From assembly GCF_039654945.1 (NCBI RefSeq), contig NW_027361752.1, positions 31,819,796 to 31,870,000 on the forward strand: a DNA stretch of 50,205 nt, written 5' to 3'. The stretch comes from Dendrobates tinctorius. Lineage: Eukaryota. Of the stretch, positions 1,681 through 50,205 are shown in pieces. Positions within the stretch are counted from its first letter, which is position 1, and every line of letters begins with the position of its first letter. The notes below the pieces were generated by a model, which was not told where the DNA came from, searched no databases, and was given only the letters and a program-made list of their open reading frames with translations. Made by a program: the position numbers and the translations under genes.

Positions 1681-3634
1681 AGTGTATAGATGTAGTGTGT
1701 AGTGTATAGATGTAGTGTGTGTGTAGTGTATAGATGTAGTGTGTGTGTAGTGTATAGATGTAGTGTGTGTGTATAGTGTATATATGTAGTGTGTGTGTAT
1801 AGTGTATAGATGTAGTGTGTGTGTATAGTGTATAGATGTAGTGTATAGATGTAGTGTGTGTGTGTGGTGTATAGATGTAGTGTGTGTATAGTGTATAGAT
1901 GTAGTGTGTGTGTAGTGTATAGATGTAGTGTGTGTGTGTGTAGTGTATAGATGTAGTGTGTGTGTAGTGTATAGATGTAGTGTGTGTAGTGTATAGATGT
2001 AGTGTGTGTAGTGTATAGATGTAGTGTGTATAGTGTATAGATGTAGTGTGTATAGGTGTAGTGTGTGTGTATAGATGTAGTGTGTGTGTATTGTGTAGTG
2101 TAGTGTGTGTGTGTATAGTGTAGTGTGTATAGGTGTAGTTTGTATAGATGTAGTGTGTATAGTGTATAGATGTCGTGTGTGTATAGTGTATAGATGTAGT
2201 GTGTGTGTATATAGTGTATAGATGTAGTGTGTGTGTATATAGTGTATAGATGTAGTGTGTGTGTATATAGTGTATAGATGTAGTGTGTGTGTATATAGTG
2301 TATAGATGTAGTGTGTATAGATGTAGTGTGTATAGATGTAGTGTGTATAGTGTATAGATGTAGTGTGTGTGTATATAGTGTATAGATGTAGTGTGTGTGT
2401 ATATAGTGTATAGATGTAGTGTGTGTGTATAGATGTAGTGTGTGTGTATAGATGTAGTGTGTGTGTATAGATGTAGTGTGTGTGTGTATAGATGTAGTGT
2501 GTGTGTGTATAGATGTAGTGTGTGTGTGTATAGATGTAGTGTGTGTGTGTATAGATGTAGTGTGTGTGTGTATAGATGTAGTGTGTGTGTGTATAGATGT
2601 AGTGTGTGTGTGTATAGTGTATAGATGTAGTGTGTATAGTGTATAGATGTAGTGTGTATAGATGTAGTGTGTGTATAGTGTATAGATGTAGTGTGTGTGT
2701 GCGTGTGTATAGATGTAGTGTGTGTGTGCGTGTGTATAGATGTAGTGTGTGTGTGCGTGTGTATAGATGTAGTGTGTGTGTGCGTGTGTATAGATGTAGT
2801 GTGTGTGTGCGTGTGTATAGATGTAGTGTGTGTGTGCGTGTGTATAGATGTAGTGTGTGTGTGCGTGTGTATAGATGTAGTGTGTGTGTGCGTGTGTATA
2901 GATGTAGTGTGTGTGTGCGTGTGTATAGATGTAGTGTGTGTGTGCGTGTGTATAGATGTAGTGTGTGTGTGCGTGTGTATAGATGTAGTGTGTGTGTGCG
3001 TGTGTATAGATGTAGTGTGTGTGTGCGTGTGTATAGATGTAGTGTGTGTGTGCGTGTGTATAGATGTAGTGTGTGTGTGCGTGTGTATAGATGTAGTGTG
3101 TGTGTGCGTGTGTATAGATGTAGTGTGTGTGTGCGTGTGTATAGATGTAGTGTGTGTGTGCGTGTGTATAGATGTAGTGTGTGTGTGCGTGTGTATAGAT
3201 GTAGTGTGTGTGTGCGTGTGTATAGATGTAGTGTGTGTGTGCGTGTGTATAGATGTAGTGTGTGTGTGCATAGTGTATAGATGTAGTGTGTGTGTGGGTA
3301 TAGTGTATATGACTAATCTATCGTTATATACGGGCACATGCACGTTACTTATTCAGTAGACACACACGCAGTCTAGCTGCACACTTTGCATGTCGTGGAT
3401 ATCTGTATACACATTACGTATTGACATACAGTATATAGCATACATATGATGGTGTGTGATGTGTGTACTGCATGTTGTGTATTCACTCTGTATAGTGTCT
3501 GTGCATTGTGTGGATACTGTATCCGCAGTACATACAGACTAAAATAAACGTAACTCCCCTCAATTTTTATTACCCATTATTCTCCTACATCCAAAGAAAA
3601 ATAAGTCAATAAAAGCATATTCCATGTGCAAAAT

Positions 3635-4227
3635 AGGGAATCTGTCACCCAATTTTTCGCATATAAGCTGCCGCCACAGCCATCAGGGGCTTATCTACAG
3701 TATTCTGTAATGCTGTAGATAAGCCCCCGATGTAACCTGAAAGAGAAGAAAAATGAGTTAGATTATACTCACCCAGGGGCGGTGGTTGTCGCGGTCCGGT
3801 GCCTCCCATCTTCATGCAATGTCGTCCTCTTCCTCACTCCTGGCATCGCACTCCTGCGCAGGCGTACTGATCTGCCCTGTTGAGGGCAGAGTAAAGTACT
3901 GCAGTGCTCAGGTGCTGGACTTCTCTGACCTTTCTCGGCGCCTGCACGCTGCAGTACTTGCCTCTCCCCTAAACAGGGGAGATCAGTACGCCTGCGCAGG
4001 AGCCGCGACATGAAGCGACGAGGATGACATTGCATGAAAATGTGAGGCATCGGACCTGGGACACCATCGCACTGGACCGCGTCCCCCGGTGAGTATAATA
4101 AAACTTTTTTCTTACCTTTCAGGTTATATCGGGGGCTTATCTACAGCATTACAGAATGCTGTAGATAAGCCCTTAAAGGCGGTAGCCACAGATTATTATA
4201 TGTGGAAAATGAGGTGACAGATTCCCT
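3635..4227. mobile_element. Palindromic MITE (TTAA-targeting, Kolobok/T2-like)
   Basis: Termini AGGGAATCTGTCACC...GGTGACAGATTCCCT followed by TTAA; internal arms are also inverted copies. Confidence 0.75.
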
Positions 4228-4885
4228 TTAACAACTCTGTTACATATGAGAAAAACGTGGATTTCCCTGGAATAATTGCAGTTTACATTTTGCAGTTGCT
4301 GTCGGGGAGGTGGTTCCTCTGTCTCTCTCTCTCTCTCTCGTTCTTTTGTTTGTCAGGACATGCCACAATCCAGCACAGTCAGCACTTGATCTATACCTTG
4401 AGATCGCCTTAGACTTCTATACCTAAGGCCTTATTCTCATGTCAGTATATTTGCATCAGTATGTCATCAGTATTTCTATGCCAATATCAGGAGTGTTTCC
4501 AAAACAGCTGGAGTCCATCTTTCAATTATAGTATTTTCCTGTAAGTTTCACTATTTGCTTTGACATACAAACCCTGATGCAAAATACTGACCAAATACTG
4601 ATGTGTGAGCGAGACCTTAGAGTGTTTTCAAATATAGAAGTGTTATTAGTTTATTTTTATCAATGCACAAAATGCAAAGTGATTGAACAAAAGAGAAATC
4701 CCATAAGTATATGGTGTGACTGCTCTTTGCCTTCATCAGTTTTCCTAGTTACACTTGCACACGGTTTTGAAGGATTTCAGCAGGAGGTTTTTCCAAACAT
4801 CTTGGAGAACTGACCCCAGATCTTCTGTAGTTTATATCATTATTTTTCTACACTTTCCTAAATATTTGCACTATTCTGTATCTCA

Positions 4886-5906
4886 TGAGAAACTGGGTCT
4901 GAGCAGAAAAAGTAAATTAATGTGCATGCAAAATGTAATTGCATATGAACACATGACCTTTACACAGAGAAAACCAAAAGCGAAACACACAACAAATATC
5001 CTGGAATAAAAAAGTAAAAAAATATATTGCAAAAATTGCATGAAGGTAGTAATAATAGTAATAATAAGGGTATTTAGTTAACATAATTTTGATCAAAATA
5101 ATGTAGAAGCCATCCCGCCACGTCACGGCAACCCTTGTGGGACAGTCCTAACTCTTGTATTTAAAACCTTTCCACTTGTCAAGTGACGTGAATGTGAACA
5201 AGGACAGAGGGACTGAACCACCAGTAATAGTATAGGCCAGACAGGATGGATTTTCCAACTCAGACACAGGGCGGTCACACCCTTATATGCACAGAATGCA
5301 CAATGAAACAAATGAGAAACTGGGTCTGAGCAGAAAAAGTAAATTAATGTGCATGCAAAATGTAATTGCATATGAACACATGACCTTTACACAGAGAAAA
5401 CCAAAAGCAAAACACAAAACAAATATCCTGGAATAAAACTTTTTTATTCCAGGATATTTGTTTTGTGTTTCGCTTTTGGTTTTCTCTGTGTAAAGGTCAT
5501 GTGTTCATATGCAATTACATTTTGCATGCACATTAATTTACTTTTTCTGCTCAGACCCAGTTTCTCATTTGTTTCATTGTGCATTCTGTGCATATAAGGG
5601 TGTGACCGCCCTGTTTCTGAGTTGGAAAATCCATCCTGTCTGGCCTATACTATTACTGGTGGTTCAGTCCCTCTGTCCTTGTTCACATTCACGTCACTTG
5701 ACAAGTGGAAAGGTTTTAAATACAAGAGTTAGGACTGTCCCACAAGGGTTGCCGTGACGTGGCGGGATGGCTTCTACATTATTTTGATCAAAATTATGTT
5801 AACTAAATACCCTTATTATTACTACTATTACTACCTTCATGCAATTTTTGCAATATTTTTTTACTTTTTTATTCCAAGATATTTGTTTTGTGTTTCGCTT
5901 TTGGTT
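4886..5906. repeat. About 1-kb foldback insertion made of a 427-bp unit, flanked by a 14-bp direct repeat
   Basis: Left arm 4886-5438 (ATGAGAAACTGGG at 4885 and 5312), inverted right arm about 5442-5906; TATTCTGTATCTCA at 4872-4885 and 5907-5920. Confidence 0.9.
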
Positions 5907-6603: not shown

Positions 6604-7450
6604 AATTTAGAGCTAATCAGACGTCGACTTCCATGTAATGAACCGAGGAGAAAGACGGAAATAAGAAGACGCCTCCTCCTCAATCACAGTCATTTGTAAA
6701 TGTGAATCCTTGTGTCTCCCTCCGTCGTCCATGTCACGTTTGTTATATCTGTTAGATGAAATGGGCAATTAAAAGGGAAGTCGTTCCCACAATACTCATC
6801 ACTCATCCTATTCTGCTCCTCTCCAAGTTCCCATGCCCCAATAATGACGCCCTGACACACAAAACATGATGTCCCCACCCAATTGCTGGGCACTGTGGCA
6901 ACCTGCTGCAGCCAGTGATTGATGTTACCTCTGCAGCCATAGAACCAGTCTGCATTGAAATGGGAGCTGCAGTAGATTGGCGAGATATTTTGTTTCTTAA
7001 TCTATTTTACCCCATTCTAAGGGGTTTTTTTTTAGTACAGGGGCTAAACATAGAGTGCCTGTTTTCTGGGTATAAAGGAGCAGTTTACTGGGGATTCTCT
7101 CTGTGCCTGGATAGGGAGCGACTTCTAGCCTTTCCACACCACTTTAGATCAGCTCTACGGAAATAGGAACTGGGGCGTGATATGGCTACACCACTCCAAA
7201 CTCATGACAACCGCCAGAATTTCCCACCCCAGAAAAGTTTATCGAGTCTCTGACTACAGTTGTGTTTCTGGCACAGCACACAGGAGTGCACGCCACTTAC
7301 AAGAGGCCCCAAATTCAGTAAGCAGCGTGCTCCTCTGTCGAGATTGGTGTAGTGCGAAGTCTCGCTCAAACATTACATGAAAAAAATACCTAAACTTATT
7401 AGGTATCTACATTTACTACAAACATTTCTATGGATGATTTGAAATAACAT

Positions 7451-7562
7451 TTTCCAGGACGTCCACCTGACAGCACTATGGAGGACGTCCTCCTCCTCCT
7501 TACAGGGACAGGAAAGCACACGAGAGGTTAAAAGGCCATGTCCCACCCCCTTTCTCTCAGTG
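7451..7562 (+). repeat. DIRS left inverted terminal repeat
   Basis: TTTCCAGGACGTCCACCTGACAGCACTATGGAG...CTCAGTG is the reverse complement of 12614-12725 with a few differences. Confidence 0.95.
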
Positions 7563-8077
7563 TTTTTCCTGTCCCTGCACGGAGGGACACGCGAGAGCTT
7601 ACCGGAGGGACCCAGGGGATCGTGCGGCCGGTCCAATCCTTCCCCTGTCAAGAGGTCCCGGGGCCGAAACTTCCCGGTGGGGAGTCCCTCGGCTCCAAAG
7701 GCCAGGAGCAGGACGGCGCTCCTGGAGGGAGCCGTTCCTCCCGGTGGGGGGGGCTCTCGGCTCCAGGACGGGTCGGCTCCCCGCAGGCGGCTGGCCATGC
7801 GGGCACCGATAGAAGTGGGGCGGCGGGCCGAGTACCCGCAGGACGCGCTGACGCTGGGCAGTGGAGGCCGGAGCGTCATAGCAGGAAAGGCTCCCTGCTC
7901 GCGCCGAGTGCGGTCGCGCGCAGATGCCCGGCAGGAAGTGGAGGCGCGGCTTACCAGCGTCACATCCGGTGACGTCAGACGCCGGTTTCAAATCCAGGGC
8001 GCGCGCGCTCCTGGACCAGAGCGTTCTCCAGCGTCACAGGTGGTTCCAGACTGTGTGACTGCATCGGACGCCAGGGG

Positions 8078-9497
8078 ATGGAAGGCAACACTGCATCTGG
8101 TGGAGGGGTAAGTGCGCATAGCGCAGACCACCCTCCCCACCCGTCCCCACAGCCCAGATCTGATGAGGTGCCCCTTATATTATCAGGAAAAGGGAACCCC
8201 GGCTGAGTCCCCCTCGGGGAAGGACCCGGCGAAAGCCACCGCCAAATCAGTCAGATGTCCGGTGTGCAGAGTAAAGCTGCCAGACACCTATAGCAAGACC
8301 CTATGCGGTCCCTGTACCTCCAGGGTCATAGGCGAGGAACAGCCATCTCTGCTTTCCGAAATGAGGTCGCTGATAAGGGAAGAGATTCAGGCCTCTACGT
8401 CCCGGCGTCGATCCCCCAGCCCTGGGCCAGGTCGCAAGCGTCCAAGGTGGGAACCAGTCCCAGTATCAGAGGCGAGCCCTAGCGAGGAATCCGATTTCCG
8501 GAACTCAGATCAGGAGGAAGAAGGCGAGATCCTGGGGGACAGTCAGGAACAGAACAGAAAGTATCTGTTCAGACTGGAGGATACGGACGAGCTGGTACAC
8601 GCGGTCAGAAATACCATGCAGATGGAAGAAGTCCCTAAGCCACAGTCCAGACAGGACTTAATGTTTGGAGGACTGGTGTCCCGCAAACAGGTGGTGTTCC
8701 CTGTGAGCGAGCACATCAAAGCAATGATCCAGGAGGAGTGGAAGGAAGCAGAGCGTCGGTTGACACTCTCCCGAATCTTTAAAAATAGACTGCCCTTCGA
8801 TCCCGAGGAAACTCGGGCGTGGGAAGAAGTCCCTAAGATCGACGTCCCGGTGGCCAAGGTTACGAAGAAATCGGCTATCCCAGCCGAGGACTCATCCGGT
8901 CTTCGAGACCCAATGGATAGAAAGGCGGACGTCTTGTTAAAAAGAACATGGGAGACGTCGGCGGCCCTGATTAGAGCCAACATAGCAGCCACCTCGGTGG
9001 CCAGGTCTATGTTCCTGTGGTTGGGGCAGTTGGAGGAAAACCTAACCAACAAGACCCCGAGGTCAGAGATACTAGCATCTCTTCCTCTTTTGAAATCAGC
9101 CACGGCGTTCCTGTCGGATACGTCGGCGGAATCTGTTAGGTTTGCGGCCAGAAACAGCTCCCTCTCTAATGCGGCCCGGAGAGCAGTCTGGCTTAGATCC
9201 TGGTCGGGGGATAACCCTTCTAAGGCCAAGTTATGTGCCATCCCTTTCTCGGGTCTGAGGGTGTTTGGTCCAGCCCTGGATAATATCCTTGAGCTGGTGT
9301 CTGATAAAAATAAGGGATTCCCGGAAGAAAAACCCAGGTGGTCCCAGTCCTTTCGGAGAGGCTCCTTCTTCAGAGGACAGTCAGAGTTTAGGGGCCGGGC
9401 GAGTTCTAATAGAGGCTCCTACAGAGGCTCCTTCAGCCAAAGTGGGAAGAACAGAGGTCCCCCATTTGCATCGACATCTAGGTCGAGGAGACAATGA
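8078..9497 (+). CDS. DIRS gag-like ORF1 (N-terminal CxxC..CxxC finger, LAP2alpha-like body, RG-rich tail); predicted spliced 8078-8107 + 8187-9497, 446 aa
   Basis: ORF 8112-9497 contains CPVC...CGPC and WEEVPKIDVPV...LRDPMDRK...ARRAVWL. ATG in ggggATGG context joins in phase 0 through GTAAGT (8108) ... TATCAG (8186). The splice is inferred. Confidence 0.85.
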
Positions 9498-11379
9498 CGC
9501 CATAGGCATTGGGGGGAGACTTCGCCACTTTGCAGCAAACTGGTCGCGAGTCACCAACAGTCAGTGGGTCCTCAGAACCATCAGAGAAGGTTACAGGATA
9601 GAGCTCTATTCTCCTCCCCCCGACAGATATATTGCCCCCACTGTCGTCCTGGAGGACTCCGCAATGTGGTCGGATCTTCAGGACATGTTAGACTCGGGGG
9701 TCATAATACCAGTTCCAGCATCAGAAAGAGGGAAAGGTCACTACTCTTCCCTGTTTGCAATTACAAAGAAATCCGGCGAGACCCGCACCATCATAAACCT
9801 GAAGCCACTAAATGCTTGGGTCAGATACAGGAGGTTCCGGATGGAATCTATCCGATCCGCGATTCCTCTGATAGACAGGGACGCAGTTATGTGCACCCTA
9901 GACCTAAAAAAGGCATATTATCAGGTTCCTATTCATCCCTCATCCCAAAGCCTACTAAGGTTCGCGATCAGTTCACCAGCCCGGACCTGCCATTTCCAGT
10001 TCCAAGGTCTTCCATTCGGGCTGGCCTCAGCTCCCAGAATCTTTACGAAACTGGTGGTAGAGGTGGTGGCCTACCTGAGAGATCAGGGTATTGTGATTGT
10101 GCCGTACCTGGACGACTTCTTACTGGTGGCAAGATCCAAAGAAGCGCTCATCCGAGACAGGATCCGAACAACTACTGTGATGGAGTTCCTGGGCTGGGTG
10201 ATCAACTGGGAGAAGTCGGACCTCACACCAAACACCAGAAAGGTATTCCTGGGAGTCCTCCTAGACTCAGCCGACAGAATATCCTGGCTACCCGAGCAGA
10301 AGCAGAAGTCCATTCAGGCCAGAACCAGAGGTCTGTTGAAGCGTCAATGCTCCATAAGGGAAGCAATGGAGGTCCTGGGCCTCATGACGGCATGCATCCA
10401 GTGTGTCCGTTGGGCCCAATTCCACTCGCGGTTGTTACAAAGAGAAATTCTCGCGAGGTGGGACAGGAGTCAGGCGTCGCTAGACAAACCCCTAAGACTC
10501 TCAGGACGAGCAAAGGAGTCCCTTCGCTGGTGGTTACAGGCCAGGAACCTTCAGGTGGGCGTGCATTGGACAACCTCTCCATACGTGGTAGTCACCACAG
10601 ACGCAAGTGCGTGGGGATGGGGAGCCTACATAGAAGGGAAGATCTTCCAGGGGAAGTGGCCAGCAAGCATCAAGGCCAGATCCTCCAATTTCAAGGAACT
10701 CTTCGCGGTCTGGGCAGCGTTGCGGAGAAACCGGTCGGTACTAAAGAGTCGTCATGTTCGCATTCTATCCGACAATACAACGACAGTGGCATTCCTGAAA
10801 CACCAAGGAGGAACCAGACATCAACCACTACAGGCACTGGCGGAAAAGATATTCACGTGGGCAGAACGGACAGTTCGATCCGTGACCGCGGTACATCTAG
10901 AGGGTTCCCAAAACGAAGTGGCGGACTACCTGAGCAGACAACAGATCCACCCGACAGAGTGGGAATTGAACATAGAGGTCTTCAACCAGCTTTGTCAGCG
11001 CTGGGGGAACCCCAGTATAGATCTCTTCGCAAGCCGCAAGAACTCGAAGGTTCCCAGATTCTACTCCCTAAATCCAATGGACCATCCAGAGGGCGTAGAC
11101 GCCCTGAGTCAGACTTGGGGAGAATCCCTCTCTTATGCGTTCCCACCACTGGCCCTCATACCGGCAGTGCTCAGAAAGATACGCGAGGACCACGCAAGAG
11201 TGATATTGATAGTGCCATACTGGCCGAGGAGAAGCTGGTTTTCCCTTCTGGGAGCCATGGCAGTAGAAGATCCAGTCGAGCTGCCCTTGTGGGAGAACAT
11301 CATCCACCAGGGCCCGATCCACCACCCGGACCCAGCAAGACTGCATCTATCGGCCTGGATCCTGAGAGGGACATCCTGA
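9259..11379 (+). CDS. DIRS pol: reverse transcriptase, RNase H and N6-adenine methyltransferase-like domain (start undefined)
   Basis: GGRL..F...W; LDLKKAY; LPFGLASAPRIFTK; YLDD; RNase H TDAS, KEL, SDN, ADYLSR; MT-like IDLFAS...YAFPP. Confidence 0.95.
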   Translation, partial: GCLVQPWIISLSWCLIKIRDSRKKNPGGPSPFGEAPSSEDSQSLGAGRVLIEAPTEAPSAKVGRTEVPHLHRHLGRGDNDAIGIGGRLRHFAANWSRVTNSQWVLRTIREGYRIELYSPPPDRYIAPTVVLEDSAMWSDLQDMLDSGVIIPVPASERGKGHYSSLFAITKKSGETRTIINLKPLNAWVRYRRFRMESIRSAIPLIDRDAVMCTLDLKKAYYQVPIHPSSQSLLRFAISSPARTCHFQFQGLPFGLASAPRIFTKLVVEVVAYLRDQGIVIVPYLDDFLLVARSKEALIRDRIRTTTVMEFLGWVINWEKSDLTPNTRKVFLGVLLDSADRISWLPEQKQKSIQARTRGLLKRQCSIREAMEVLGLMTACIQCVRWAQFHSRLLQREILARWDRSQASLDKPLRLSGRAKESLRWWLQARNLQVGVHWTTSPYVVVTTDASAWGWGAYIEGKIFQGKWPASIKARSSNFKELFAVWAALRRNRSVLKSRHVRILSDNTTTVAFLKHQGGTRHQPLQALAEKIFTWAERTVRSVTAVHLEGSQNEVADYLSRQQIHPTEWELNIEVFNQLCQRWGNPSIDLFASRKNSKVPRFYSLNPMDHPEGVDALSQTWGESLSYAFPPLALIPAVLRKIREDHARVILIVPYWPRRSWFSLLGAMAVEDPVELPLWENIIHQGPIHHPDPARLHLSAWILRGTS

Positions 11380-12392
11380 AGGCAAAAGGATTGTCGGAGC
11401 AGGTCATATCCACCCTACAGGCCAGCAGGAAGCCGGTGACGTCGGCAATTTATCGGAAGATATGGAGGAGATTTTGTCTGGAGGGTGGCAGGTCCGAGCT
11501 CGTGGCAGGTACCCCGGATCTCCCTAACATACTAGGGTTCCTGCAGGCAGGTTTTAATAAAGGCCTCAAGCCCAGCACTCTAAAAGTCCAGGTTTCAGCT
11601 TTGAGCGCCTTCTTTGATTATCAGTTAGCTGCACATCCCTGGGTGATAAGGTTTATAAAAGCCACACAGCGCCTGCGTCCCACGATTAGGCAGCTCACCC
11701 CGCCATGGGACCTGGGCCTGGTACTTCGGTTCCTCTGCTCGGACACTTTCGCCCTTAGTGAGAAGATAACCATCCCTGCTCTCACTCGTAAAACGGCCTT
11801 TCTAGTAGCCATTACCACGGCCAAAAGAATAGGGGAGATCCAGGCCCTATCCACTAAGGATCCATACCTCCAGATAAGAGAGGATAGTATAATCCTAAGG
11901 TTAGACCCGGCATTTACCCCGAAGGTAGCCTCTACAAGAAATCTGAATCAGGAGGTAGTGTTACCCTCTTTCTGTGATAATCCCCGAAATGAGGAGCGGC
12001 GGCTCCACTCGCTAGACGTGAGGCGCGCAGTTATAGAGTACCTAGAGGCCACCAATAGTTGGCGTATCGACCCGAACCTGTTCGTTCTCTTTGGGGGTAG
12101 GAATAAAGGGAAGAGGGCCTCTAAGGCGTCCATAGCGCGTTGGATTACCTCAGTAATCTCGGACGCCTACCAGGCTGAAGGCGCCAGCCCGCCTGATTCC
12201 TTAAAAGCCCACTCTACAAGGGCGGTATCGGCCTCATGGGCCGAGCGGGCGGGGGCGTCAGTTGATCAAATTTGTCGAGCGGCAACCTGGGCTAGTCTTA
12301 ATACATTCTGCAACCATTACAAACTAGATGTGTTAGCTGGCCAACAAACCGCATTCGGGAGAAAAGTTCTCCAAGCAGTAATCCCACCCTGA
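9498..12392 (+). CDS. DIRS tyrosine recombinase ORF (catalytic part about 11370-12392) with a long N-terminal extension overlapping pol
   Basis: RIGEIQAL (R), PKV (K), HSTR (HxxR), AATW, NHY (Y). The frame is open from just after the gag stop. Confidence 0.93.
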   Translation, partial: RHRHWGETSPLCSKLVASHQQSVGPQNHQRRLQDRALFSSPRQIYCPHCRPGGLRNVVGSSGHVRLGGHNTSSSIRKRERSLLFPVCNYKEIRRDPHHHKPEATKCLGQIQEVPDGIYPIRDSSDRQGRSYVHPRPKKGILSGSYSSLIPKPTKVRDQFTSPDLPFPVPRSSIRAGLSSQNLYETGGRGGGLPERSGYCDCAVPGRLLTGGKIQRSAHPRQDPNNYCDGVPGLGDQLGEVGPHTKHQKGIPGSPPRLSRQNILATRAEAEVHSGQNQRSVEASMLHKGSNGGPGPHDGMHPVCPLGPIPLAVVTKRNSREVGQESGVARQTPKTLRTSKGVPSLVVTGQEPSGGRALDNLSIRGSHHRRKCVGMGSLHRREDLPGEVASKHQGQILQFQGTLRGLGSVAEKPVGTKESSCSHSIRQYNDSGIPETPRRNQTSTTTGTGGKDIHVGRTDSSIRDRGTSRGFPKRSGGLPEQTTDPPDRVGIEHRGLQPALSALGEPQYRSLRKPQELEGSQILLPKSNGPSRGRRRPESDLGRIPLLCVPTTGPHTGSAQKDTRGPRKSDIDSAILAEEKLVFPSGSHGSRRSSRAALVGEHHPPGPDPPPGPSKTASIGLDPERDILKAKGLSEQVISTLQASRKPVTSAIYRKIWRRFCLEGGRSELVAGTPDLPNILGFLQAGFNKGLKPSTLKVQVSALSAFFDYQLAAHPWVIRFIKATQRLRPTIRQLTPPWDLGLVLRFLCSDTFALSEKITIPALTRKTAFLVAITTAKRIGEIQALSTKDPYLQIREDSIILRLDPAFTPKVASTRNLNQEVVLPSFCDNPRNEERRLHSLDVRRAVIEYLEATNSWRIDPNLFVLFGGRNKGKRASKASIARWITSVISDAYQAEGASPPDSLKAHSTRAVSASWAERAGASVDQICRAATWASLNTFCNHYKLDVLAGQQTAFGRKVLQAVIPP

Positions 12393-12409
12393 GGAGGTGC
12401 TTTGGTACT

Positions 12410-12496
12410 CTCCATAGTGCTGTCAGGTGGACGTCCTGGAAAATAGGTATTAGACCTACCGGTAATGATGTTTCCAGGAGTCCATCCTGACAGCAC
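12410..12496. repeat. DIRS internal complementary region (ICR)
   Basis: First part is the reverse complement of the left ITR start; second part is the reverse complement of the element's 3' end. They join across AAAA, which predicts the circle junction. Confidence 0.95.
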
Positions 12497-12613
12497 GGGT
12501 AGTTCCCTCCCTCTTATGTTATACTATGTTGTATTATGTTATGTCATATGCTGTAATATGATTGTTTCATTAAACCGTTACTAGCATCATCCACCTTGTG
12601 GTACTTGTCAAAT

Positions 12614-12755
12614 CACTGAGGGAAAGGGGGTGGGACATGGCCTTTTAACCTCTCGTGTGCTTTCCTGTCCCTGTAAGGAGGAGGAGGACGTCCTCCATAG
12701 TGCTGTCAGGATGGACTCCTGGAAACATCATTACCGGTAGGTCTAATACCTATTT
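12614..12755. repeat. DIRS right ITR plus right extension
   Basis: Inverted copy of 7451-7562, then CATCATTACCGGTAGGTCTAATACCTATTT. Confidence 0.95.
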
Positions 12756-15315
12756 TTTTCTATATACATTACATTGTGTGTATGCCAAAACTGCGTTAAA
12801 TAATACAATTTGTGTCTGATACAATCATGGCAGAAGGAAAAAAGTCACTGCTTCTACAATGCAGAGTCAACCTGATGGACATTAAAGAGCAGATAATTCC
12901 CAAATTTTAACCTATCTTAAGGAAAGGTAATTTGCTGATGGTGGGGGTCTGACTGGTGGGAATAGCACCGATTCCGACAATGGGGGAACGACTGGAGTGG
13001 AGCGGTGGTCTCGCACAGGCGGACTGGAGTGCTGCACTTGGCTAATGGGGCATTTCATAGACCGGCTCTTGGGGTCTGTGATTGTAGTAACCCTTCTCGG
13101 GGTGAATATGAACCTTTATGGGGGGATTGTGCACTGAGATGATGTGTATAAATGTCTTGTGCTTCCTTGAGGCCTGCAATGTAGATCTGTAGAGAAGTCA
13201 TGAAGTGTCATTCTGTGGACGCCGTGTGTGTACAGCGCTGTACAACTTTTATTAAACGGGTCATTCAAAAACCAAACATTTACTCTGAGTCCAATCTGTT
13301 CACAACCGACTGCTGAGCTTTCCTGGGAAATGGGAAAGCGTTAATGCACACACTGGACCCTTCCCCATGGTTAGGACTGGCAAATATTTAATGAGTATGA
13401 CACCTTTAAAAGTGTAATTATCTAGACCTTCATATTGGGGACATCGATCCTATAAAAATAATCCTGTTACTGTTGATTTCAGTAAATGGGTTTTAAAGAA
13501 AAACAATTACATGAATAAGGTGGTTTTGGTCCACCCTTGGTGCACCCACGGGATGCACAGATATGTCCCCTCGATTACAATAGCCTCCCCTCATGGAGGT
13601 TTGGAGCACAGTCTGGTCCAACTCCCCAGCCCTTAATATACGGACACTGGAGCGCCTGTATACACAGTGTCGGTGTGCAGGAGAAGCTCTCTTCTCTGTG
13701 TATAGCAGCCGCCAGTGCTGTCGTTCCGTGTGTAGCGAGCGGCTGCTCTACACACAGGAGAGGGAGAGGATGGCGTGCCTGCACAGACGGCTCGTGCACA
13801 CTCTCAGGCCCTGTAGTGTCAGTGCAGAGTTAGATCAGAGACAACGCCATCATGGGTTGGATCAGTGCCTCGAATGCATGGCTACCCCAAGGGTGCACCA
13901 ATTTAAAAAATTATAGGAGAGAAAATCCTCACGTTTACTGAACTTTGATGTTTTATAAGGACTGAGTCCCAAATATGAAGATCTGAATGGTTAAATTTCA
14001 CTTTTGGGGATGACAGACTTCCTTTCTAGGAATTGAACCTATATCGGCAATTTTTAGAAGAGACCGTTACTTTACGATGGTCGGCAGTCCGACTCTTGGC
14101 TAATACTGCACATTACATGAAGATTTGCCGGAAAGTTTATCCCATTCATTGCAAAGGGTGAAATCCGCATTGGAAGAAGTGATTTATTTCGGATTCCAAA
14201 GTCCAGACCAGGATATGTTCCGCTGGTACTGTAATATGTAACATCTCCTTTTTTTTTTTCTGGCATTTTGGATCACAAGGGCCAGTACAAGAACTGTATC
14301 TGCGCTGAGAAGAAGCAGCAGGGCGCTGGTTCACAAACGACGTAATGGCGGCAGAGACTGCCTGTTTAGAGAAGTGAAGGAACCTCTGTGTTAACAGGCC
14401 GCTCTGTGTCGGGAGAGATCATTGCAGGGCAGTACAGGCAGGTAGTTAGCAACTGCCTGCTGCCAAGTGCTTAGTACCATAGAAGACAAAAGCCCTAGAT
14501 AACCCCTTAAAGGGAATGTTCACACAGGACACAAATTGCAGTGGACAAAAAATATTGCAAATTTGCAACATAAATTGACTCGTTGCAAATTTATAGCACC
14601 ACTTCAGCAGGTTTTATTTTTTAATCTCGTCGCTGAAGTGGGGCAGCTAGATATACGTTCTCTGGCACTAGTATAATACCAGCTGCCGTCTTCAGCTCCA
14701 GTCCTGCGCCATCTTGTGACCCCCAACGTCTGAATGACCGGAAGTCAGAGGTAACAGTCATAAGCGTTCAATAGAAGTTTGAGACCCTCGTTCTGGCTCT
14801 ACTGCATTAACATTGAGTTGGGGTCCGCCCAGCAAACACTGGAGAGACCACCGCAGCTCAGAGCGGCGCTAATAATGGATGAAGACGACAACTGCTAAAT
14901 AAGACTAGGGGCATTGAACTTAGATTATTAGCACCATAGATTAGAGCGCTGCAAGAAAAAAACACCCTCTGGAGTGGCGCTTTGAAGTCCGCACTCCAGG
15001 GTCTGCGTATATTCTGTGCAGCATCTAGGTGAGATTTGGTAAGATCTATACAGAAATCCTGCAGCGTATCTGCTCGTGCGAATGGCTGGTCATGAATAGT
15101 TTGTGCACTGTCAACATGGAGTAAGTACTTGGAAGAGCTGCAACTACAGATGTGGAAACACTCAACGAGTGGCGTTGTTGGCTGACTGCTGTGCCACTCC
15201 ATTTATCTCTCCCACATGCCTATTTCTAACTCTTCAGTATGTAGCGTGTGCCTCTGTCTACCCCCAGAGTGCTGTTAGATGATGGGATGTAATATAACAT
15301 TGGGCCATCCATGCC

Positions 15316-16320: not shown

Positions 16321-17940
16321 CTACTCCGCTGCCGGTCAGTGATGAGGGGGGTCTACTCCGCTGCCGGTCAGTGATGAGGGGGGTCTACTCCGCTGCCGGT
16401 CAGTGATGAGGGGGGTCTACTCCGCTGCCGGTCAGTGATGAGGGGGGTCTACTCCGCTGCCGGTCAGTGATGAGGGGGGTCTACTCTGCTGCCGGTCAGT
16501 GATGAGGGGGGGAGACTACTCCGCTGCCGGTCAGTGATGAGGGGGGGAGACTACTCCGCTGCCGGTCAGTGATGAGGGGGGGAGACTACTCCGCTGCCGG
16601 TCAGTGATGAGGGGGGGAGACTACTCCGCTGCCGGTCAGTGATGAGGGGGGGAGACTACTCCGCTGCCGGTCAGTGATGAGGGGGGGAGACTACTCCGCT
16701 GCCGGTCAGTGATGAGGGGGGGAGACTACTCCGCTGCCGGTCAGTGATGAGGGGGGGAGACTACTCCGCTGCCGGTCAGTGATGAGGGGGGGAGACTACT
16801 CCGCTGCCGGTCAGTGATGAGGGGGGGAGACTACTCCGCTGCCGGTCAGTGATGAGGGGGGGAGACTACTCCGCTGCCGGTCAGTGATGAGGGGGGGAGA
16901 CTACTCCGCTGCCGGTCAGTGATGAGGGGGGGAGACTACTCCGCTGCCGGTCAGTGATGAGGGGGGGAGACTACTCCGCTGCCGGTCAGTGATGAGGGGG
17001 GGAGACTACTCCGCTGCCGGTCAGTGATGAGGGGGGGAGACTACTCCGCTGCCGGTCAGTGATGAGGGGGGGAGACTACTCCGCTGCCGGTCAGTGATGA
17101 GGGGGGGAGACTACTCCGCTGCCGGTCAGTGATGAGGGGGGGAGACTACTCCGCTGCCGGTCAGTGATGAGGGGGGGAGACTACTCCGCTGCCGGTCAGT
17201 GATGAGGGGGGGAGACTACTCCGCTGCCGGTCAGTGATGAGGGGGGGAGACTACTCCGCTGCCGGTCAGTGATGAGGGGGGGAGACTACTCCGCTGCCGG
17301 TCAGTGATGAGGGGGGGAGACTACTCCGCTGCCGGTCAGTGATGAGGGGGGGAGACTACTCCGCTGCCGGTCAGTGATGAGGGGGGGAGACTACTCCGCT
17401 GCCGGTCAGTGATGAGGGGGGGAGACTACTCCGCTGCCGGTCAGTGATGAGGGGGGGAGACTACTCCGCTGCCGGTCAGTGATGAGGGGGGGAGACTACT
17501 CCGCTGCCGGTCAGTGATGAGGGGGGGAGACTACTCCGCTGCCGGTCAGTGATGAGGGGGGGAGACTACTCCGCTGCCGGTCAGTGATGAGGGGGGGAGA
17601 CTACTCCGCTGCCGGTCAGTGATGAGGGGGGGAGACTACTCTGCTGCCGGTCAGTGATGAGGGGGGGAGACTACTCCGCTGCCGGTCAGTGATGAGGGGG
17701 GGAGACTACTCTGCTGCCGGTCAGTGATGAGGGGGGGAGACTACTCCGCTGGCGGTCAGTGATGAGGGGGGAGACTACTCCGCTGGCGGTCAGTGATGGG
17801 GGGGGGGAGACTACTCCGCTGGCGGTCAGTGATGGGGGGGGGGGAGACTACTCCGCTGGCGGTCAGTGATGAGGGGGGGGGTCTACTCCGCTGCCGGTCA
17901 CTGATGAGGGGGTCTACTCCGGTGCCGGTCAGTGATGAGG
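16321..17940. repeat. G-rich minisatellite, 35-bp unit CTACTCCGCTGCCGGTCAGTGATGAGGGGGGGAGA (32-bp variant at the start), about 46 copies
   Basis: Direct reading. Confidence 0.97.
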
Positions 17941-33391: not shown

Positions 33392-33896
33392 GTAAGTTAT
33401 ACTTATGTCCTGTGTAATAGAAATGCACTCACCTAAAGCTTAAAGTAGATTTACATTAGTAAGCCTGATGTTGGGATTTTTACATTCTGATGACAAAAGT
33501 TTAGTCACATCTTTCTGAAAAACTAAATCGCAGCGTGGCAGCACTTCTGTTATCAGTTTTTCCATAGCAGCCACCTTGAGAAAAATGTCAGATACCGACC
33601 CCGGTTACTGCTGGTGTGCAGCATCATACAGAGCATACATGGTTGTCAGGTCACACATACAGGATGTGTGATCTGAAAGCCATAAAGAAGTATCACTATC
33701 CCAGACGTGTATGGCAACTATGCCGACCATGCCATAAATATCTGGATATGGGACCTAGAGGCAACATCCGCACTTATGTGGAGAGCCAGTGTACAGGAGA
33801 TGTGGCCGCTTTCTCCATTCGCTTCCCACTGATTGCTTCTGCTGATCTCATACCTGCAGTAGAAATGAATGTGGAGAGCCCACATGCACGTGGTGC

Positions 33897-34176
33897 CGCC
33901 TCTGCCGTTCATTCTCTGCCCTCACGACCGCCTCTGCCGTTCATTCTCTGCCCTCAAGACCGCCTCTGCCGTTCATTCTCTGCCCTCACGACCGCCTCTG
34001 CCGTTCATTCTCTGCCCTCACGACCGCCTCTGCCGTTCATTCTCTGCCCTCACGACCGCCTCTGCCGTTCATTCTCTGCCCTCACGACCGCCTCTGCCGT
34101 TCATTCTCTGCCCTCACGACCGCCTCTGCCGTTCATTCTCTGCCCTCACGACCGCCTCTGCCGTTCATTCTCTGCC
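33897..34176. repeat. 32-bp minisatellite CCGCCTCTGCCGTTCATTCTCTGCCCTCACGA, about 9 copies
   Basis: Direct reading. Confidence 0.95.
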
Positions 34177-34580
34177 CATTTATTCCATGGCGCTTTACAT
34201 GGGAAAAGGGGAAATATAGACAAGTAAAATAAACATGTGCAAGACAAGGGACACACAAGTACAGAAGGAGAGAGCACACTGCCTGTGAGGGCTCACAGTC
34301 TACAGGGATGGGTGAGGATATTGATAAAATGTCATAGGCCGCATAGGTTGATTCTGCACCATAATTGTTTCCAATATTTCATTTAAGCTGTTTTTTTTTT
34401 TTTTTCTGCAGCCTGTACCAGATGTCACTGATGACTGACAGGGCAGATGTAAAGTTCTCAGGCTGATTTTTGCCACAGATTTGGACTTGGCCTTACAGAC
34501 TTTATGCCTGGTCTTCAGCAAAAATCTCAGTTCCTGGCGAAATCTACAAAGCTAAAGAAAATGTTCTTGTTTCCTTGCAG

Positions 34581-37972: not shown

Positions 37973-38298
37973 TTAAATAAGTAAAATTCCAAAGTGCTTG
38001 TAAAAAAGAGAAACTTTAGCATTTTACCCCTTTGTAAAAAAAAAAAAAAAAATACTCAACAATAGAGGGATTTTTAGTTTCTAGATTTCCCTGCCCATTG
38101 CCTAGGGTGTAAGCGCACACTCTTGTGTAGGAAACCAGCCACTTCGGATTTACTGCAGATGTGGCTGGTTTCTTGCGCAAGAGCGTTCGCTTATGAGCTG
38201 TTTGATACGCAGCTTGCACGTGCTGCTCTGAAGCTGCCAAGATCTGTCCTGCTTCAGTGCCCCTGTTGCGGGCACATGGGTTATACCAGGAGCCCAAC

Positions 38299-39889
38299 CG
38301 TGCTTCTGGACTGAACTGTCCATCTTCAGCAGGGCAGCCGTGCCTCTGGACTGAACTGTCCATCTTCAGCAGGGCAGCCGTGCCTCTGGACTGAACTGTC
38401 CCATCTTCAGTAGGGCAGCCGTGCCTCTGGACTGAACTGTCCCATCTTCAGGAGGGCAGCCGTGCCTCTGGACTGAACTGTCCCATCTTCAGCAGGGCAG
38501 CCGTGCCTCTGGACTGAACTGTCCCATCTTCAGCAGGGCAGCCGTGCCTCTGGACTGAACTGTCCCATCTTCAGCAGGGCAGCCGTGCCTCTGGACTGAA
38601 CTGTCCCATCTTCAGCAGGGCAGCCGTGCCTCTGGACTGAACTGTCCCATCTTCAGCAGGGCAGCCGTGCCTCTGGACTGAACTGTCCCATCTTCAGCAG
38701 GGCAGCCGTGCCTCTGGACTGAACTGTCCCATCTTCAGCAGGGCAGCCGTGCCTCTGGACTGAACTGTCCCATCTTCAGCAGGGCAGCCGTGCCTCTGGA
38801 CTGAACTGTCCCATCTTCAGCAGGGCAGCCGTGCCTCTGGACTGAACTGTCCCATCTTCAGCAGGGCAGCCGTGCCTCTGGACTGAACTGTCCCATCTTC
38901 AGCAGGGCAGCCGTGCCTCTGGACTGAACTGTCCCATCTTCAGCAGGGCAGCCGTGCCTCTGGACTGAACTGTCCCATCTTCAGCAGGGCAGCCGTGCCT
39001 CTGGACTGAACTGTCCCATCTTCAGCAGGGCAGCCGTGCCTCTGGACTGAACTGTCCCATCTTCAGCAGGGCAGCCGTGCCTCTGGACTGAACTGTCCCA
39101 TCTTCAGCAGGGCAGCCGTGCCTCTGGACTGAACTGTCCCATCTTCAGCAGGGCAGCCGTGCCTCTGGACTGAACTGTCCCATCTTCAGCAGGGCAGCCG
39201 TGCCTCTGGACTGAACTGTCCCATCTTCAGCAGGGCAGCCGTGCCTCTGGACTGAACTGTCCCATCTTCAGCAGGGCAGCCGTGCCTCTGGACTGAACTG
39301 TCCCATCTTCAGCAGGGCAGCCGTGCCTCTGGACTGAACTGTCCCATCTTCAGCAGGGCAGCCGTGCCTCTGGACTGAACTGTCCCATCTTCAGCAGGGC
39401 AGCCGTGCCTCTGGACTGAACTGTCCCATCTTCAGCAGGGCAGCCGTGCCTCTGGACTGAACTGTCCCATCTTCAGCAGGGCAGCCGTGCCTCTGGACTG
39501 AACTGTCCCATCTTCAGCAGGGCAGCCGTGCCTCTGGACTGAACTGTCCCATCTTCAGCAGGGCAGCCGTGCCTCTGGACTGAACTGTCCCATCTTCAGC
39601 AGGGCAGCCGTGCCTCTGGACGGAACTGTCCCATCTTCAGCAGGGCAGCCGTGCCTCTGGACGGAACTGTCCCATCTTCAGCAGGGCAGCCGTGCCTCTG
39701 GACGGAACTGTCCCATCTTCAGCAGGGCAGCCGTGCCTCTGGACGGAACTGTCCCATCTTCAGCAGGGCAGCCGTGCCTCTGGACGGAACTGTCCCATCT
39801 TCAGCAGGGCAGCCGTGCCTCTGGACGGAACTGTCCCATCTTCAGCAGGGCAGCCGTGCCTCTGGACGGAACTGTCCCATCTTCAGCAG
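38299..39889. repeat. 41-bp minisatellite GTGCCTCTGGACTGAACTGTCCCATCTTCAGCAGGGCAGCC, about 39 copies, in the last GABPA intron
   Basis: Direct reading; the last 7 units carry a T>G variant (GGACGG). Confidence 0.97.
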
Positions 39890-40029
39890 CGCTGGGGGGG
39901 TTGCGCTCTTGTAAAAAGAGAATTTATTTTAATCACTTGTCTTATTTTGCTTTTTCTTTTATTTACATTTTAACCATAAACCCTCATGCTGTATATTTAT
40001 ATATATTTTTTTTCTCTCTGGTCCTCTAG

Positions 40030-47037: not shown

Positions 47038-48527
47038 ATGCCCAACCCTTCAGGGGATCTCTGCTTCAGGCCCACCGCTATCTATTACGCCTGTGCGCGC
47101 TGTAAAAAGAAGTGGGCATCGGGTCAGTCGTCTCCATTCTGCCCCCCCTGCAGTCCTTCCAATATGTCAGCATCTCAGGAGCGCACAGAGTCCCGGGCGG
47201 AGGGCGCTCTTCCCTCCTCTCTCCCCCCGGAGTGGGCCGTTACTTTTGTCAAGTCAGAAACAGACTGTGACATTGTATCACAGTCGCTGGTCCAGGTTTT
47301 AGAACGATTACCTCAGCTATCCTCAGCCACCTCTGCCCCGACCACCTCTCGGGGTGAGTCGTCCGCACCTGACCGCGACCTTCAGAGAGACAGACTGGGA
47401 AGGTCTTCTAGGAAGCGGGCTCTGTCCACTTCGTCCTCGAGCTCGCAGGGCCCTTCCGCTCCCAGGCCTCCTTCTCCTTCCTCAGATGACAGCCTTCAGT
47501 CAGGCGATGATTCTCATTCGGAAGCTAGCTCTGAGGGGAACAGCGTTTCTAAAACGCGGGACATGGTCGATAGTCTTCTTGCAGCTATCTTCCAAACACT
47601 AAAACTTAAACAGGATGAGGCTCCAGCTCAGGAAAGCTCGGTTGTCCTTAGACGAGCCAGACCTCCGTCCCGAACCTTTCCCAATCACAACGATTTCAAT
47701 ACTACCTTAGCCAAACACTGGGAGCGCCCTGAACAACGTTTCTCAGGCCGCAAGTATTTGGACGTTCTGTACCCCTTTGACGCAGAACTGCTCTCAAAGT
47801 GGTCCAAGGCTCCAGAGGTAGATCCTCCAGTATCCCGGATAGCCTCTAAAACGGTGCTCTCTCTGCCAGACGGGGCGTCGCTCAAAGATCCTACTGACAG
47901 GCAGATTGAATCTCTGGCTAAGTCTATCTTTGAGGCATTGGCGCCTCTCTCTGCCCTATTTTCGCATCCGCCTGGGTGGCGAAGGTCATTTCCGCTTGGG
48001 CAAAAATCCTTCGCAGAGGCATCTTAGCGTCAGCTCCTCAAGACGAATTGGCAGATCTTGCAGATCAGATTAACCAGGCGGGAAAATACCTTTTGGCCGC
48101 CTCCTTAGACGCGGCCGGCTGCGTAGCAAGGGCTAACAGCAACATAGTAGCTGTACGCCGAGTCCTTTGGCTAAAGTCATGGAATGCGGACACTACTTCG
48201 AAAAAGTCGCTTACCAATCTGCCATTCCATGGCTCTAGGCTCTTTGGAGCAAAGCTGGATCAGATAATTTCCGATGCCACTGGAGGCAAAAGTACTTCGC
48301 TTCCCCAGTCTCGACCAAAACGTCCCTTCAATAGAAGGGGGTTTCGACCATTCAGGCCTTTTCGTCCCTTCTCTGCCACGGAGAGAGCCACTCAACAGGA
48401 TCGGCCGCCTGCCACCAGGGAGCGGGATCAGAGGAAACCTTCCTACAAACCCGCTCCTCGCTGGAGATCTAGAGGACAATATTCCAGATCTGCAGGAGCC
48501 AATTCCGGCAGATTTTCGTCTAAGTGA
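47038..48527 (+). pseudogene. Element 2 gag-like ORF with a 1-nt deletion frameshift near 47937
   Basis: CARC...CPPC finger; WSKAPEVDPPV...LKDPTDRQ; homology resumes in another frame as GASLCPIFASAWVAK...VRRVLWL. Confidence 0.85.
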
Positions 48528-50205
48528 CGGGTCACCCCCACCTGGAATTTCTTCCAGGGTGGGCGGCAGACTTTCCTTTTTCGCGGATGCTTGGCTGTCC
48601 GTTGTAGACGACGATTGGGTCAGAGAACTCGTCGCATCCGGTTACAAAATCGAATTTGCTTCACTCCCGAACAGACGGTTTTTCCCGGTCTCGGCCTCCG
48701 CGACAGCGGGCCCAGATTCCGGGTTTTCTGCAGGCCATTTCCTCCCTTCTTTCCGCCGGAGTCATTGTTCCCGTTCCCTCAGACGAACGGTTTTCCGGGT
48801 TCTACTCCAATCTCTTTGTAGTCCCGAAGAAAGACGGCTCTCTTCGTCCTATTCTGGACCTCAAATTGCTCAATCGCCACGTGAAGATTCTTCATTTCAG
48901 GATGGAGTCTCTTCGGTCGGTGATTGCTTCCATGGAGCCCGGGGAATTTCTCTGCTCGGTGGACATTCGGGATGCCTATCTCCACATTCCAATATGTGTG
49001 CAACATCAGAAGTATCTTCGATTTGCGTTTCAGGGAGACCACTTTCAGTTCACAGCTCTTCCTTTCGGCCTGGCTTCAGCGCCCCGGGTTTTCACGAAGG
49101 TGATGGCGACTGTGATGGCCATCCTTCGCTCCAGAGGGATCCTCATCATCCCTTATCTGGACGATCTTTTGATCAAGGGTTCGTCTCGCCAGGACTGTCT
49201 CCGGAGCCTTCAGATAACCCTGGACACTCTCAGCCGCCTAGGTTGGCTAGTCAACAAGGAGAAGTCCATTCTGGTCCCCACCCAGCGTCTGACCTTTCTG
49301 GGTATGGAATTCGACACGGAGCTAGCCCGTGTTTTTCTTCCAAAGGAAAAATTTACAACTCTGTCCAAGTGCATCAAAACTCTCAAGAGGCCTGCTCCCA
49401 TTCCCATTCGGTTCGGCATGAAGGTCCTGGGGAAGATGGTGGCCTCCATGGAGGCAGTGCCCTTTCCGCAGTATCACCTTCGCCCTCTCCAGCTGTCTCT
49501 GCTTTCAGCCTGGGACAAGACCACGATGTCCTTGGACCGTCCTATTCGGCTTCCTCTCAGAGTGAGGCAGTCTCTCACTTGGTGGCTACGGCCAGCGTCA
49601 GTTCTCCAAGGGAGGTCCTTCCTTCCGCCTCAGTGGCAAATCATCACCACCGATGCGAGCCTTCTAGGATGGGGAGCCGTGTTCCATCAGAAAGCGGCCC
49701 AAGGACGCTGGAAGCCACAGGAGTCTCTCCTTCCTATCAATCTTTTGGAGATCAGGGCGATTTTCCTGGCCCTTCTTCACTGGCAGCCCCTCCTTTCCGG
49801 CAAGCCGGTCCGCATTCAGTCGGACAACGCCACGGCCGTGGCGTACATAAACCATCAGGGGGGTACGCGCAGCAAACAGGTAATGTCAGAAGTGGCCAAG
49901 ATATTCCGCTGGGCAGAATGTTACGTTCCGACAATCTCCGCCGTCCATATTCCAGGGGTGGAAAATTGGGCAGCCGACTTTCTCAGTCGCCAGGGCCTAG
50001 CGTCCGGCGAATGGTCCCTGCACCCCGCGGTTTTCTCTCAGATATGCGACCGTTGGGGCACCCCGGATGTCGATCTCATGGCATCTCGGATGAACCACAA
50101 GGTGCCGCAGTTCGTAGCCAGGTCCAGGGACCCTCTAGCCGTCGCATGCGACGCACTGGTGACTCCGTGGTCCCAGTTTCAACTTCCGTATCTGTTCCCG
50201 CCTCT
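48268..50205 (+). pseudogene. Element 2 pol (RT-RNase H-MT), partial, with a 1-nt insertion near 48685
   Basis: VGGRL..F...W...GYKIEF; after the extra C: FYSNLFVVPKKDG, DIRDAY, LPFGL, YLDD, TDAS, SDN, ADFLSR, DLMAS, YLFPP. Confidence 0.9.

Follow-up and report, generated by a model that had tools for sequence, protein, structure and literature searches.

How does a DIRS retrotransposon express its tyrosine recombinase (YR)? This question, which as far as we could find has never been explained, was raised by a 50,205-nt stretch of the Dendrobates tinctorius genome (contig NW_027361752.1, hereafter the window), in which gag and YR of a DIRS element appear to be one reading frame interrupted by a single stop codon. 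The initial annotation proposed that readthrough of this stop yields a Gag-linker-YR fusion of about 1410 aa. We confirmed the underlying observation and found the proposal to be supported by comparative, rather than experimental, evidence: in this element and in about 45 other DIRS families, the shared frame is broken by one stop of a leaky type, so the recombinase is probably made by occasional stop-codon readthrough.

We first examined the architecture of the element (element 1; all features described here are on the + strand), which is an apparently intact DIRS1-like retrotransposon. Its left terminus (7443-7566) contains an inverted repeat (7451-7566) that pairs with 12610-12725 over 116 nt at 94-97% identity. 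The right-hand region (12410-12756) comprises an internal complementary region (12410-12496), in which 12410-12451 is complementary to 7443-7483 and 12440-12496 to 12700-12756, and the right inverted terminal repeat with its extension (12610-12756). The gag frame is open from 8112, has its first ATG at 8163 and encodes 444 aa from that ATG to a TGA ending at 9497 (LAP2alpha, Pfam accession PF11560, 2.9e-15). Pol (9508-11379) lies in the +1 frame relative to gag and matches RVT_1 (1.5e-18) and, below Pfam's curated cut-offs, RT_RNaseH (1.6e-4) and a Dam-like methyltransferase (7.3e-5). YR (11361-12392) is in the gag frame and starts where pol ends. Its Phage_integrase match is weak (1.7e-4; 21.8 bits, below Pfam's 27.1-bit cut-off), but H-x-x-R and Y motifs are visible in the translation, identity to YR of other DIRS loci is 40-50%, and AlphaFold2 confidently predicts a recombinase-like fold (a helical N-domain plus a catalytic domain) for residues 622-961 of the post-stop frame.

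The proposed readthrough site of element 1 is CAA-UGA-CGC (9492-9500), with the TGA at 9495-9497. Between 7560 and 12400, the gag frame has stops only at 8109, 9495 and 12390. After the gag stop, 964 sense codons run to the YR stop at 12390-12392, and a fusion starting at the first gag ATG would thus be 444 + 1 + 964 = 1409 aa, in agreement with the initial annotation. Of the 964 codons, 626 overlap pol, whose frame is open from 9265 to 11379. Synonymous-codon shuffles of pol produced 16.1 +/- 3.3 stops in the overlapping frame (minimum 6 in 2000 shuffles), whereas none are observed, and none of the 146 vulnerable sites has the T that would make a stop.

A second DIRS element in the window belongs to a different family (pol 42% identical) and presents a similar junction. 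Its gag (47509-48527) ends AAG-UGA-CGG, with the TGA at 48525-48527. The initial annotation restored the downstream frame by removing one extra C near 48685. We find that the pol homology (48559-50205) changes frame once between 48685 and 48736 and that the overlapping frame shifts with it; measured against the local pol frame, the -1 frame has 0 stops in 531 codons up to the window end, with YR lying beyond it. The initial annotation did not mention that gag of this element also has a frame break, near 47950.

We next asked whether this arrangement is general, and checked against related elements each outcome that the initial annotation had named as contrary to its hypothesis; the hypothesis held for the large majority. 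Gag and YR form one frame with one stop in 35 of 41 full-overlap families and, after indel-broken copies were re-read, in 42 families with pol under 80% identical (38 of them from metagenome contigs). The same holds in three further frog species. By contrast, families without the overlap have 49-58 stops in that frame. Pfam searches of the upstream ORFs of metagenome loci gave only one weak LAP2alpha hit, though BLAST linkage shows that many, but not all, are homologous to each other. Other arrangements exist: gag is in a third frame in families L005 and L050/L067, gag of family L020 is in the pol frame behind a single TAG-G, and one snake family (L090) has only a partial overlap, with 28 stops after gag. 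The families are related, so shared ancestry inflates these counts. A shared frame is also partly forced, since only the -1 frame of pol can be kept open by synonymous choices and gag is -1 of pol for its own reasons.

Across the 42 families, gag ends in TGA in 31, TAG in 11 and TAA in 0, and the absence of TAA is significant against the pol-frame codon background (p=1.4e-8). In the first set of 35 families, TAA ends gag in at most 1 of 35 (the one call was a mis-assigned internal stop) but ends 20 of 66 pol and YR ORFs of the same elements (p=7e-4). The following base is likewise biased, with TGA-C in 22/31 (p=5e-5) and TAG-G in 9/11 (p=0.003), and motifs include TGA-CTA (seven families), TGA-CGC (four) and TGA-CGG (two). 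These match Beier and Grimm's type II (UGA-CGG/UGA-CUA) and type III (UAG-G) readthrough motifs as summarised in PMC3159437, although the CGC of element 1 is not the textbook CGG or CUA. All 9 anuran families examined keep [C/A]A[A/G]-TGA-CG[C/G], although four-fold sites are saturated.

A hairpin follows the stop across families. The best hairpin within 80 nt after the stop is on average 5.6 kcal/mol more stable than control windows of the same element (Wilcoxon p=1.3e-6) and is in the best 10% of controls in 22 of 41 families (p=4e-12). The stem starts a median 12 nt after the stop, and related families have different stem sequences at the same place. Element 2 has a hairpin of 11-13 bp (48535-48565) starting about 10 nt after its stop. 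The best local hairpin of element 1 (9514-9557, -13.9 kcal/mol), however, is a weak candidate only, as 37% of control windows in the same element fold as well (z = -0.56). Folding z-scores of whole windows showed only a modest effect (-1.89 against -0.85 to -1.34). Long-range pairing between the G-run of the pol VGGR codons and the C-run of the PPP codons was not supported: covariation in frogs is weak, and there was no significant difference from loci then classed as non-overlap (p=0.16), most of which were later reclassified.

The stop-proximal signal is not needed for pol. In element 1, the pol frame is already open across 9265-9497 but contains no ATG there, and entry into pol must occur in this stretch by an unidentified shift. 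Across 44 families, the pol frame is open a median 255 nt upstream of the gag stop, against 32 nt for the third frame (p=9e-9). A +1 shift into pol at the stop itself was suggested by TTT-TGA, TCC-TGA and CCC-TAG and by family L009, where the pol frame opens 8 nt before the stop, but was set aside in view of this pattern and because L009's relative L017 is open 339 nt upstream of the pol start. Frameshifting could alternatively provide entry to YR, with ribosomes in the pol frame slipping -1 shortly after the gag stop or taking a +1 then -1 detour around it. L020 and L005 must use a frameshift from gag or pol to reach the YR frame, which in them opens 90-100 nt before the gag stop, as a frameshift needs, and a hairpin can also stimulate frameshifting. 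In the main arrangement, though, the YR frame is open exactly from the gag stop and gag is already in that frame, so a detour is unnecessary. No slippery heptamer was identified, and the leaky-stop statistics would be left unexplained. We thus consider this route improbable.

A somewhat less remote, but still unlikely, alternative is that ribosomes finish Gag and some restart within the next 10-20 codons, by reinitiation or at a non-AUG codon, making a free spacer-YR protein. Five of nine frog families have an ATG 13-21 codons after the stop, the homologous codon in the others is GTG or CTG (near-cognate starts), and the hairpin could serve such a mechanism. This codon nevertheless overlaps a conserved pol Trp codon, so any preceding base gives NTG and it carries no information. 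Across the 42 families, the first in-frame ATG is scattered, lying 13-299 codons after the stop (283 in element 1), and the N-terminal 'M' of the ~950-aa Logan and ENA proteins is a GTG/TTG call by a bacterial gene caller. Reinitiation gives no reason to avoid TAA or to prefer TGA-C and TAG-G, its signals generally seem to lie upstream of the stop rather than downstream, and restarting after a 444-codon ORF would normally be very inefficient.

It is also very unlikely that YR starts at an internal AUG (10347, 10392 or 10617 in element 1), with the upstream stretch open by chance or for a reason unrelated to its translation. An NCBI model (P0001, 97% identical, 682 aa) does start inside the spacer, but about 7 stops would be expected in the 283 codons before the first ATG, the same openness recurs in more than 40 families, and the ATG positions are not conserved.

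Splicing of gag, or of the 5' leader, to the YR frame appears equally unlikely. NCBI's gene model P0068 for a snake element joins gag to the YR frame through an in-frame 1071-nt GT..AG intron, and that family has 28 stops after gag, so it cannot use readthrough; the model may, however, be a predictor's artefact. Splicing would not need 620 stop-free codons. Contigs of four runs, whose RNA status is only a guess and which miss rare forms, cross 7930-11708 colinearly, keep the TGA and show no joints inside 7930-12407. Two further NCBI Gag-YR fusion models (P0062 and P0010) are mosaics that hop between frames or elements.

The 620-codon spacer (9498-11360; gag frame, -1 of pol) is G/S/R/P-rich, has no Pfam domain and is predicted to be disordered, with AlphaFold2 pLDDT below 50 and no secondary structure for residues 1-620. 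Its amino-acid identity among frog families is 19-25%, against 43-64% for YR, and four-fold-site identity in pol is only 0.04-0.06 above expectation, giving little sign of selection on the spacer sequence. The spacer is kept open but barely constrained, though a 620-aa junk linker is an odd thing to translate.

Taken together, these observations favor a model, more likely than not in our view, in which most ribosomes stop at the gag UGA and make Gag, while a minority decode it as a sense codon and continue across the spacer to YR, and pol is reached separately by a +1 shift somewhere in the roughly 230 nt before the gag stop. That the stop is actually read through, and that fusion to Gag delivers YR into the particle, remain inferences. 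Such a mechanism would explain the long pol/YR overlap, set a low, fixed ratio of YR to Gag and tie the recombinase to the particle-forming protein. More tentatively, DIRS1-like elements could split one mRNA three ways: termination giving Gag, a +1 shift about 250 nt before the gag stop giving Gag-Pol, and readthrough of a hairpin-backed leaky stop giving Gag-spacer-YR. In this view, the 600-620-codon spacer would be a translated tether selected only to lack stops, the arrangement would be old and nearly universal in the superfamily, and rare lineages (L020, L005) would swap which product is reached by readthrough and which by frameshift. DIRS elements make up a large share of amphibian, fish and many invertebrate genomes. 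Gene predictors currently annotate the overlapping frame as about 950-aa 'uncharacterized proteins' or invent introns to join it to gag.

A comparison with known systems places these features in context. The Candida albicans retrotransposon Tca2 also has an in-frame UGA and a downstream structure (a 3' pseudoknot) between gag and the next ORF, pol, yet reporter tests found no readthrough from the junction sequence (PMC2194720), which shows that the architecture alone does not prove the mechanism. The long ORF overlap of DIRS1-like elements is itself already known, having been reported in half of 28 elements, including Xenopus and Anolis, with the catalytic domain in the non-overlapping 3' end (Piednoel et al. 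2011, PMC3266345). That paper gives no mechanism and does not mention the frame identity with gag, the single stop or its context; our full-text searches found no DIRS paper that mentions readthrough, although prior mention of the frame relation cannot be excluded. In our sample, nearly all loci have the overlap once indel-broken copies are read piecewise. Alphavirus nsP3/nsP4 and plant-virus type II readthrough use UGA-CGG or UGA-CUA plus an extended 3' stem-loop (PMC3159437), and we observe the same stop and 3' triplets, with TGA-CTA in seven families and TGA-CGG or TGA-CGC in all the frog families, and a hairpin downstream. These viruses are RNA viruses with no overlapping frame, and element 1 has CGC and a weak hairpin of its own. 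Finally, in murine leukaemia virus, a retroelement gag stop (a type III signal, UAG-G plus a 3' pseudoknot after an 8-nt spacer) is suppressed in a minority of ribosomes to give a Gag-enzyme fusion. Eleven DIRS families use TAG, nine of them TAG-G, and several have a stem starting about 5-8 nt after the stop, though no pseudoknot was shown. In DIRS, the fusion partner would be the recombinase rather than pol, reached only after 620 codons laid over pol in another frame.

We first examined the content of the window and found that element 1 (about 7443-12756) is a complete DIRS1-like retrotransposon, with inverted terminal repeats (7451-7566 and 12610-12725) and an internal complementary region that matches both termini. 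Its gag ORF contains a LAP2alpha-type domain, and its pol, which lies in the +1 frame relative to gag, has RT, RNase H-like, and Dam-like methyltransferase matches, of which only the RT match is above the Pfam cut-off. The tyrosine recombinase (YR) is in the gag frame, and the closest database protein is 97% identical and comes from Dendrobates tinctorius. Upstream of gag, a 183-codon open stretch in the gag frame (7560-8111) is separated from gag by one stop at 8109, though this region is GC-rich, with an Arg/Gly/Ala/Pro-rich translation, and the open stretch is probably compositional. Elsewhere, the window contains a near-perfect palindrome at 5018-5862 (two 421-nt arms, 99% complementary and 3 nt apart, with a further 131-nt inverted match linking 4885-5015 and 5438-5568), long and very regular tandem arrays at 38196-39900, 16328-17700, 2489-3404, and 33864-34215 with periods of 41, 35, 27, and 32 nt (98-100% identical units), and GT-rich microsatellite-like repeats at 1-2100 around an assembly gap (N run 746-1098).

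The initial annotation proposed that gag and YR are one frame split by a single stop codon, and we found this observation to hold. In element 1, gag ends CAA-TGA-CGC at 9495-9497 and the same frame has no other stop until 12390. Of the 964 codons after the gag stop, 626 overlap pol. Shuffling the synonymous codons of pol gives 16.1 +/- 3.3 stops in that frame and never fewer than 6, and none of the 146 positions that could create a stop carries the T needed. By contrast, the other alternative frame has 41 stops, as expected by chance. Neither pol nor the YR frame has a usable early ATG, and the first in-frame Met after the gag stop is 283 codons in. Element 2, which belongs to a different family (pol 42% identical), ends gag with AAG-TGA-CGG at 48525-48527. 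One frame break between 48685 and 48736 shifts pol and the overlapping frame together and, read piecewise, the overlapping frame has no stop in 531 codons up to the window end. The gag of element 2 has a second frame break near 47950.

We next asked whether this arrangement is conserved among frogs. A protein search with the 964-aa frame found relatives of about 950 aa in many anurans, and DNA was retrieved for seven further frog families (Bufo, Xenopus, Rana, Hyperolius, Engystomops, and two from Logan assemblies). Together with the two window elements, all nine have [C/A]A[A/G]-TGA-CG[C/G] at the gag stop, followed by 961-971 open codons in the gag frame up to the YR stop where the locus reaches it (element 2 runs off the window). 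Four-fold degenerate sites between these families are saturated (identity 0.30 against 0.26 expected), and the conserved nine nucleotides are therefore under selection of their own. Both overlapping translations are unconserved at that spot.

A wider scan of metagenome contigs with a pol alignment returned 80 DIRS loci. In 41 full-overlap families (pol under 80% identical), 35 have a long gag-position ORF directly upstream in the same frame, one stop, and then about 960-1020 open codons to the YR stop. Most loci that initially appeared to lack the overlap turned out to be copies with an indel in pol which, read against the local pol frame, also have 0 stops over 580-690 codons. Only three loci truly lack the overlap (49-58 stops). 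In the enlarged set of 42 families, the gag stop is TGA in 31, TAG in 11, and TAA in 0, and the absence of TAA has p=1.4e-8 against the share of AAN codons in the pol frame. In the first set of 35 families, TAA ends gag in at most 1 of 35 (and that one call was a mis-assigned internal stop) but ends 20 of 66 pol and YR ORFs of the same elements (p=7e-4). The base following the stop is C after TGA in 22 of 31 (p=5e-5) and G after TAG in 9 of 11 (p=0.003). The three families without the overlap have gag in a different frame relation (pol is -1 of gag), and their stops are TGA-A, TAA-C, and TAG-A.

An analysis of RNA structure revealed that the best hairpin within 80 nt after the stop is on average 5.6 kcal/mol more stable than in 20-27 control windows of the same element (Wilcoxon p=1.3e-6). 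This hairpin ranks in the best tenth of controls in 22 of 41 families (p=4e-12) and beats every control in 15, with the stem beginning a median 12 nt after the stop. Related families carry quite different stem sequences at the same place, which is the pattern expected of a conserved structure, although no formal covariation test was possible. Element 2 has an 11-13 bp hairpin starting about 10 nt after the stop, whereas the best hairpin of element 1 (9514-9557, -13.9 kcal/mol) is not better than background.

Comparison of the overlapping stretch among frog families shows an amino-acid identity of 19-25%, against 43-64% for YR, and a composition that is 43% Gly, Ser, Arg, and Pro. Four-fold sites of pol, which are first codon positions of the overlapping frame, are only 0.04-0.06 more alike than composition predicts. 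AlphaFold2 with a 19-sequence alignment gives pLDDT below 50 and no secondary structure for residues 1-620 and a confident predicted fold for residues 622-961, which starts at about nucleotide 11361, just where pol ends at 11379. The stretch is therefore kept open and little else, as expected if ribosomes merely have to cross it.

Several codons before the stop (TTT, TCC, CCC) are reminiscent of +1 shift sites, raising the possibility that the signal instead serves pol. However, the pol frame is open a median 255 nt upstream of the gag stop (IQR 217-309), against 32 nt for the third frame (p=9e-9, n=44), and is kept open in this way in 42 of 44 families. Pol entry thus lies upstream of the stop (9265-9497 in element 1), though the pol frame has no ATG there, its translation is not conserved before the VGGRL motif, and no site for a shift (+1 or -2) was identified.

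A few loci depart from the main arrangement. In L005 (167-4874; also L006 and L007), which has an intact 1005-aa spacer-YR ORF found in 95 sample blocks, and in L050/L067, gag is in the third frame, and the YR frame opens 92 nt (L005) to about 370 nt (L050/L067) before the gag stop. In L005, pol is gag -1 and the YR frame is gag +1, and kinesin or ubiquitin-conjugating enzyme genes lie within 100 nt downstream, so the unidentified host genome is compact. In L020 (371-2270 and 2167-5196) the roles are swapped: gag and pol are one frame separated by a single TAG-G, as in MuLV, and the YR frame, 1009 codons and -1 of pol, opens about 100 nt before the gag stop. In L013 (1446-6326), gag, spacer, and YR form one uninterrupted ORF of 1626 codons, though a gag-tail-like peptide is left in another frame, so this is probably a copy fused by an indel. 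In every arrangement the YR frame is -1 of pol and its 5' end sits at or just before the end of gag, which fits entry from gag by recoding, with readthrough when in frame and a shift when not.

Splicing could provide an alternative route from gag to YR. The corn-snake (Pantherophis guttatus) element (L090, 2501-7219) has only a partial overlap and 28 stops after gag, which the 1215-aa NCBI model bridges through an in-frame 1071-nt GT..AG intron (4181-5251). This model is either a predictor's artefact or a splice route to a Gag-YR fusion. For element 1, four public runs hold the element, one contig covers 7930-11708 colinearly, the TGA is kept, and no joints fall inside 7930-12407. As these are contigs whose RNA origin is only guessed, they argue weakly against an abundant spliced form and say nothing about translation.

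Readthrough of the gag stop is the best-supported explanation, which we hold with moderate confidence. It is not proven and rests on five independent comparative signals: the single in-frame stop, the stop type, its context, the hairpin, and an open but unconstrained spacer with no conserved start. A cautionary example is provided by Tca2, which shows that such an architecture can fail reporter tests (PMC2194720).

The overlap itself was already known. Piednoel et al. 2011 (PMC3266345) describe a 'long ORF overlap' between pol and YR in half of 28 DIRS1-like elements and note that the catalytic domain lies in the non-overlapping 3' end. Neither that paper, nor the Xenopus survey (PMC9210276), nor the Dictyostelium papers mention readthrough, the frame identity with gag, or the stop context, and full-text searches for papers combining DIRS with readthrough or recoding, which did not extend to the older key papers, found nothing. 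Viewed against characterized readthrough systems, the favoured stop contexts of the 42 families (TGA-C and TAG-G), among which TGA-CTA (7) and TGA-CGC (4) are the commonest, match the type II (UGA-CGG / UGA-CUA) and type III (UAG-G) readthrough motifs summarised by Firth et al. 2011 (PMC3159437).
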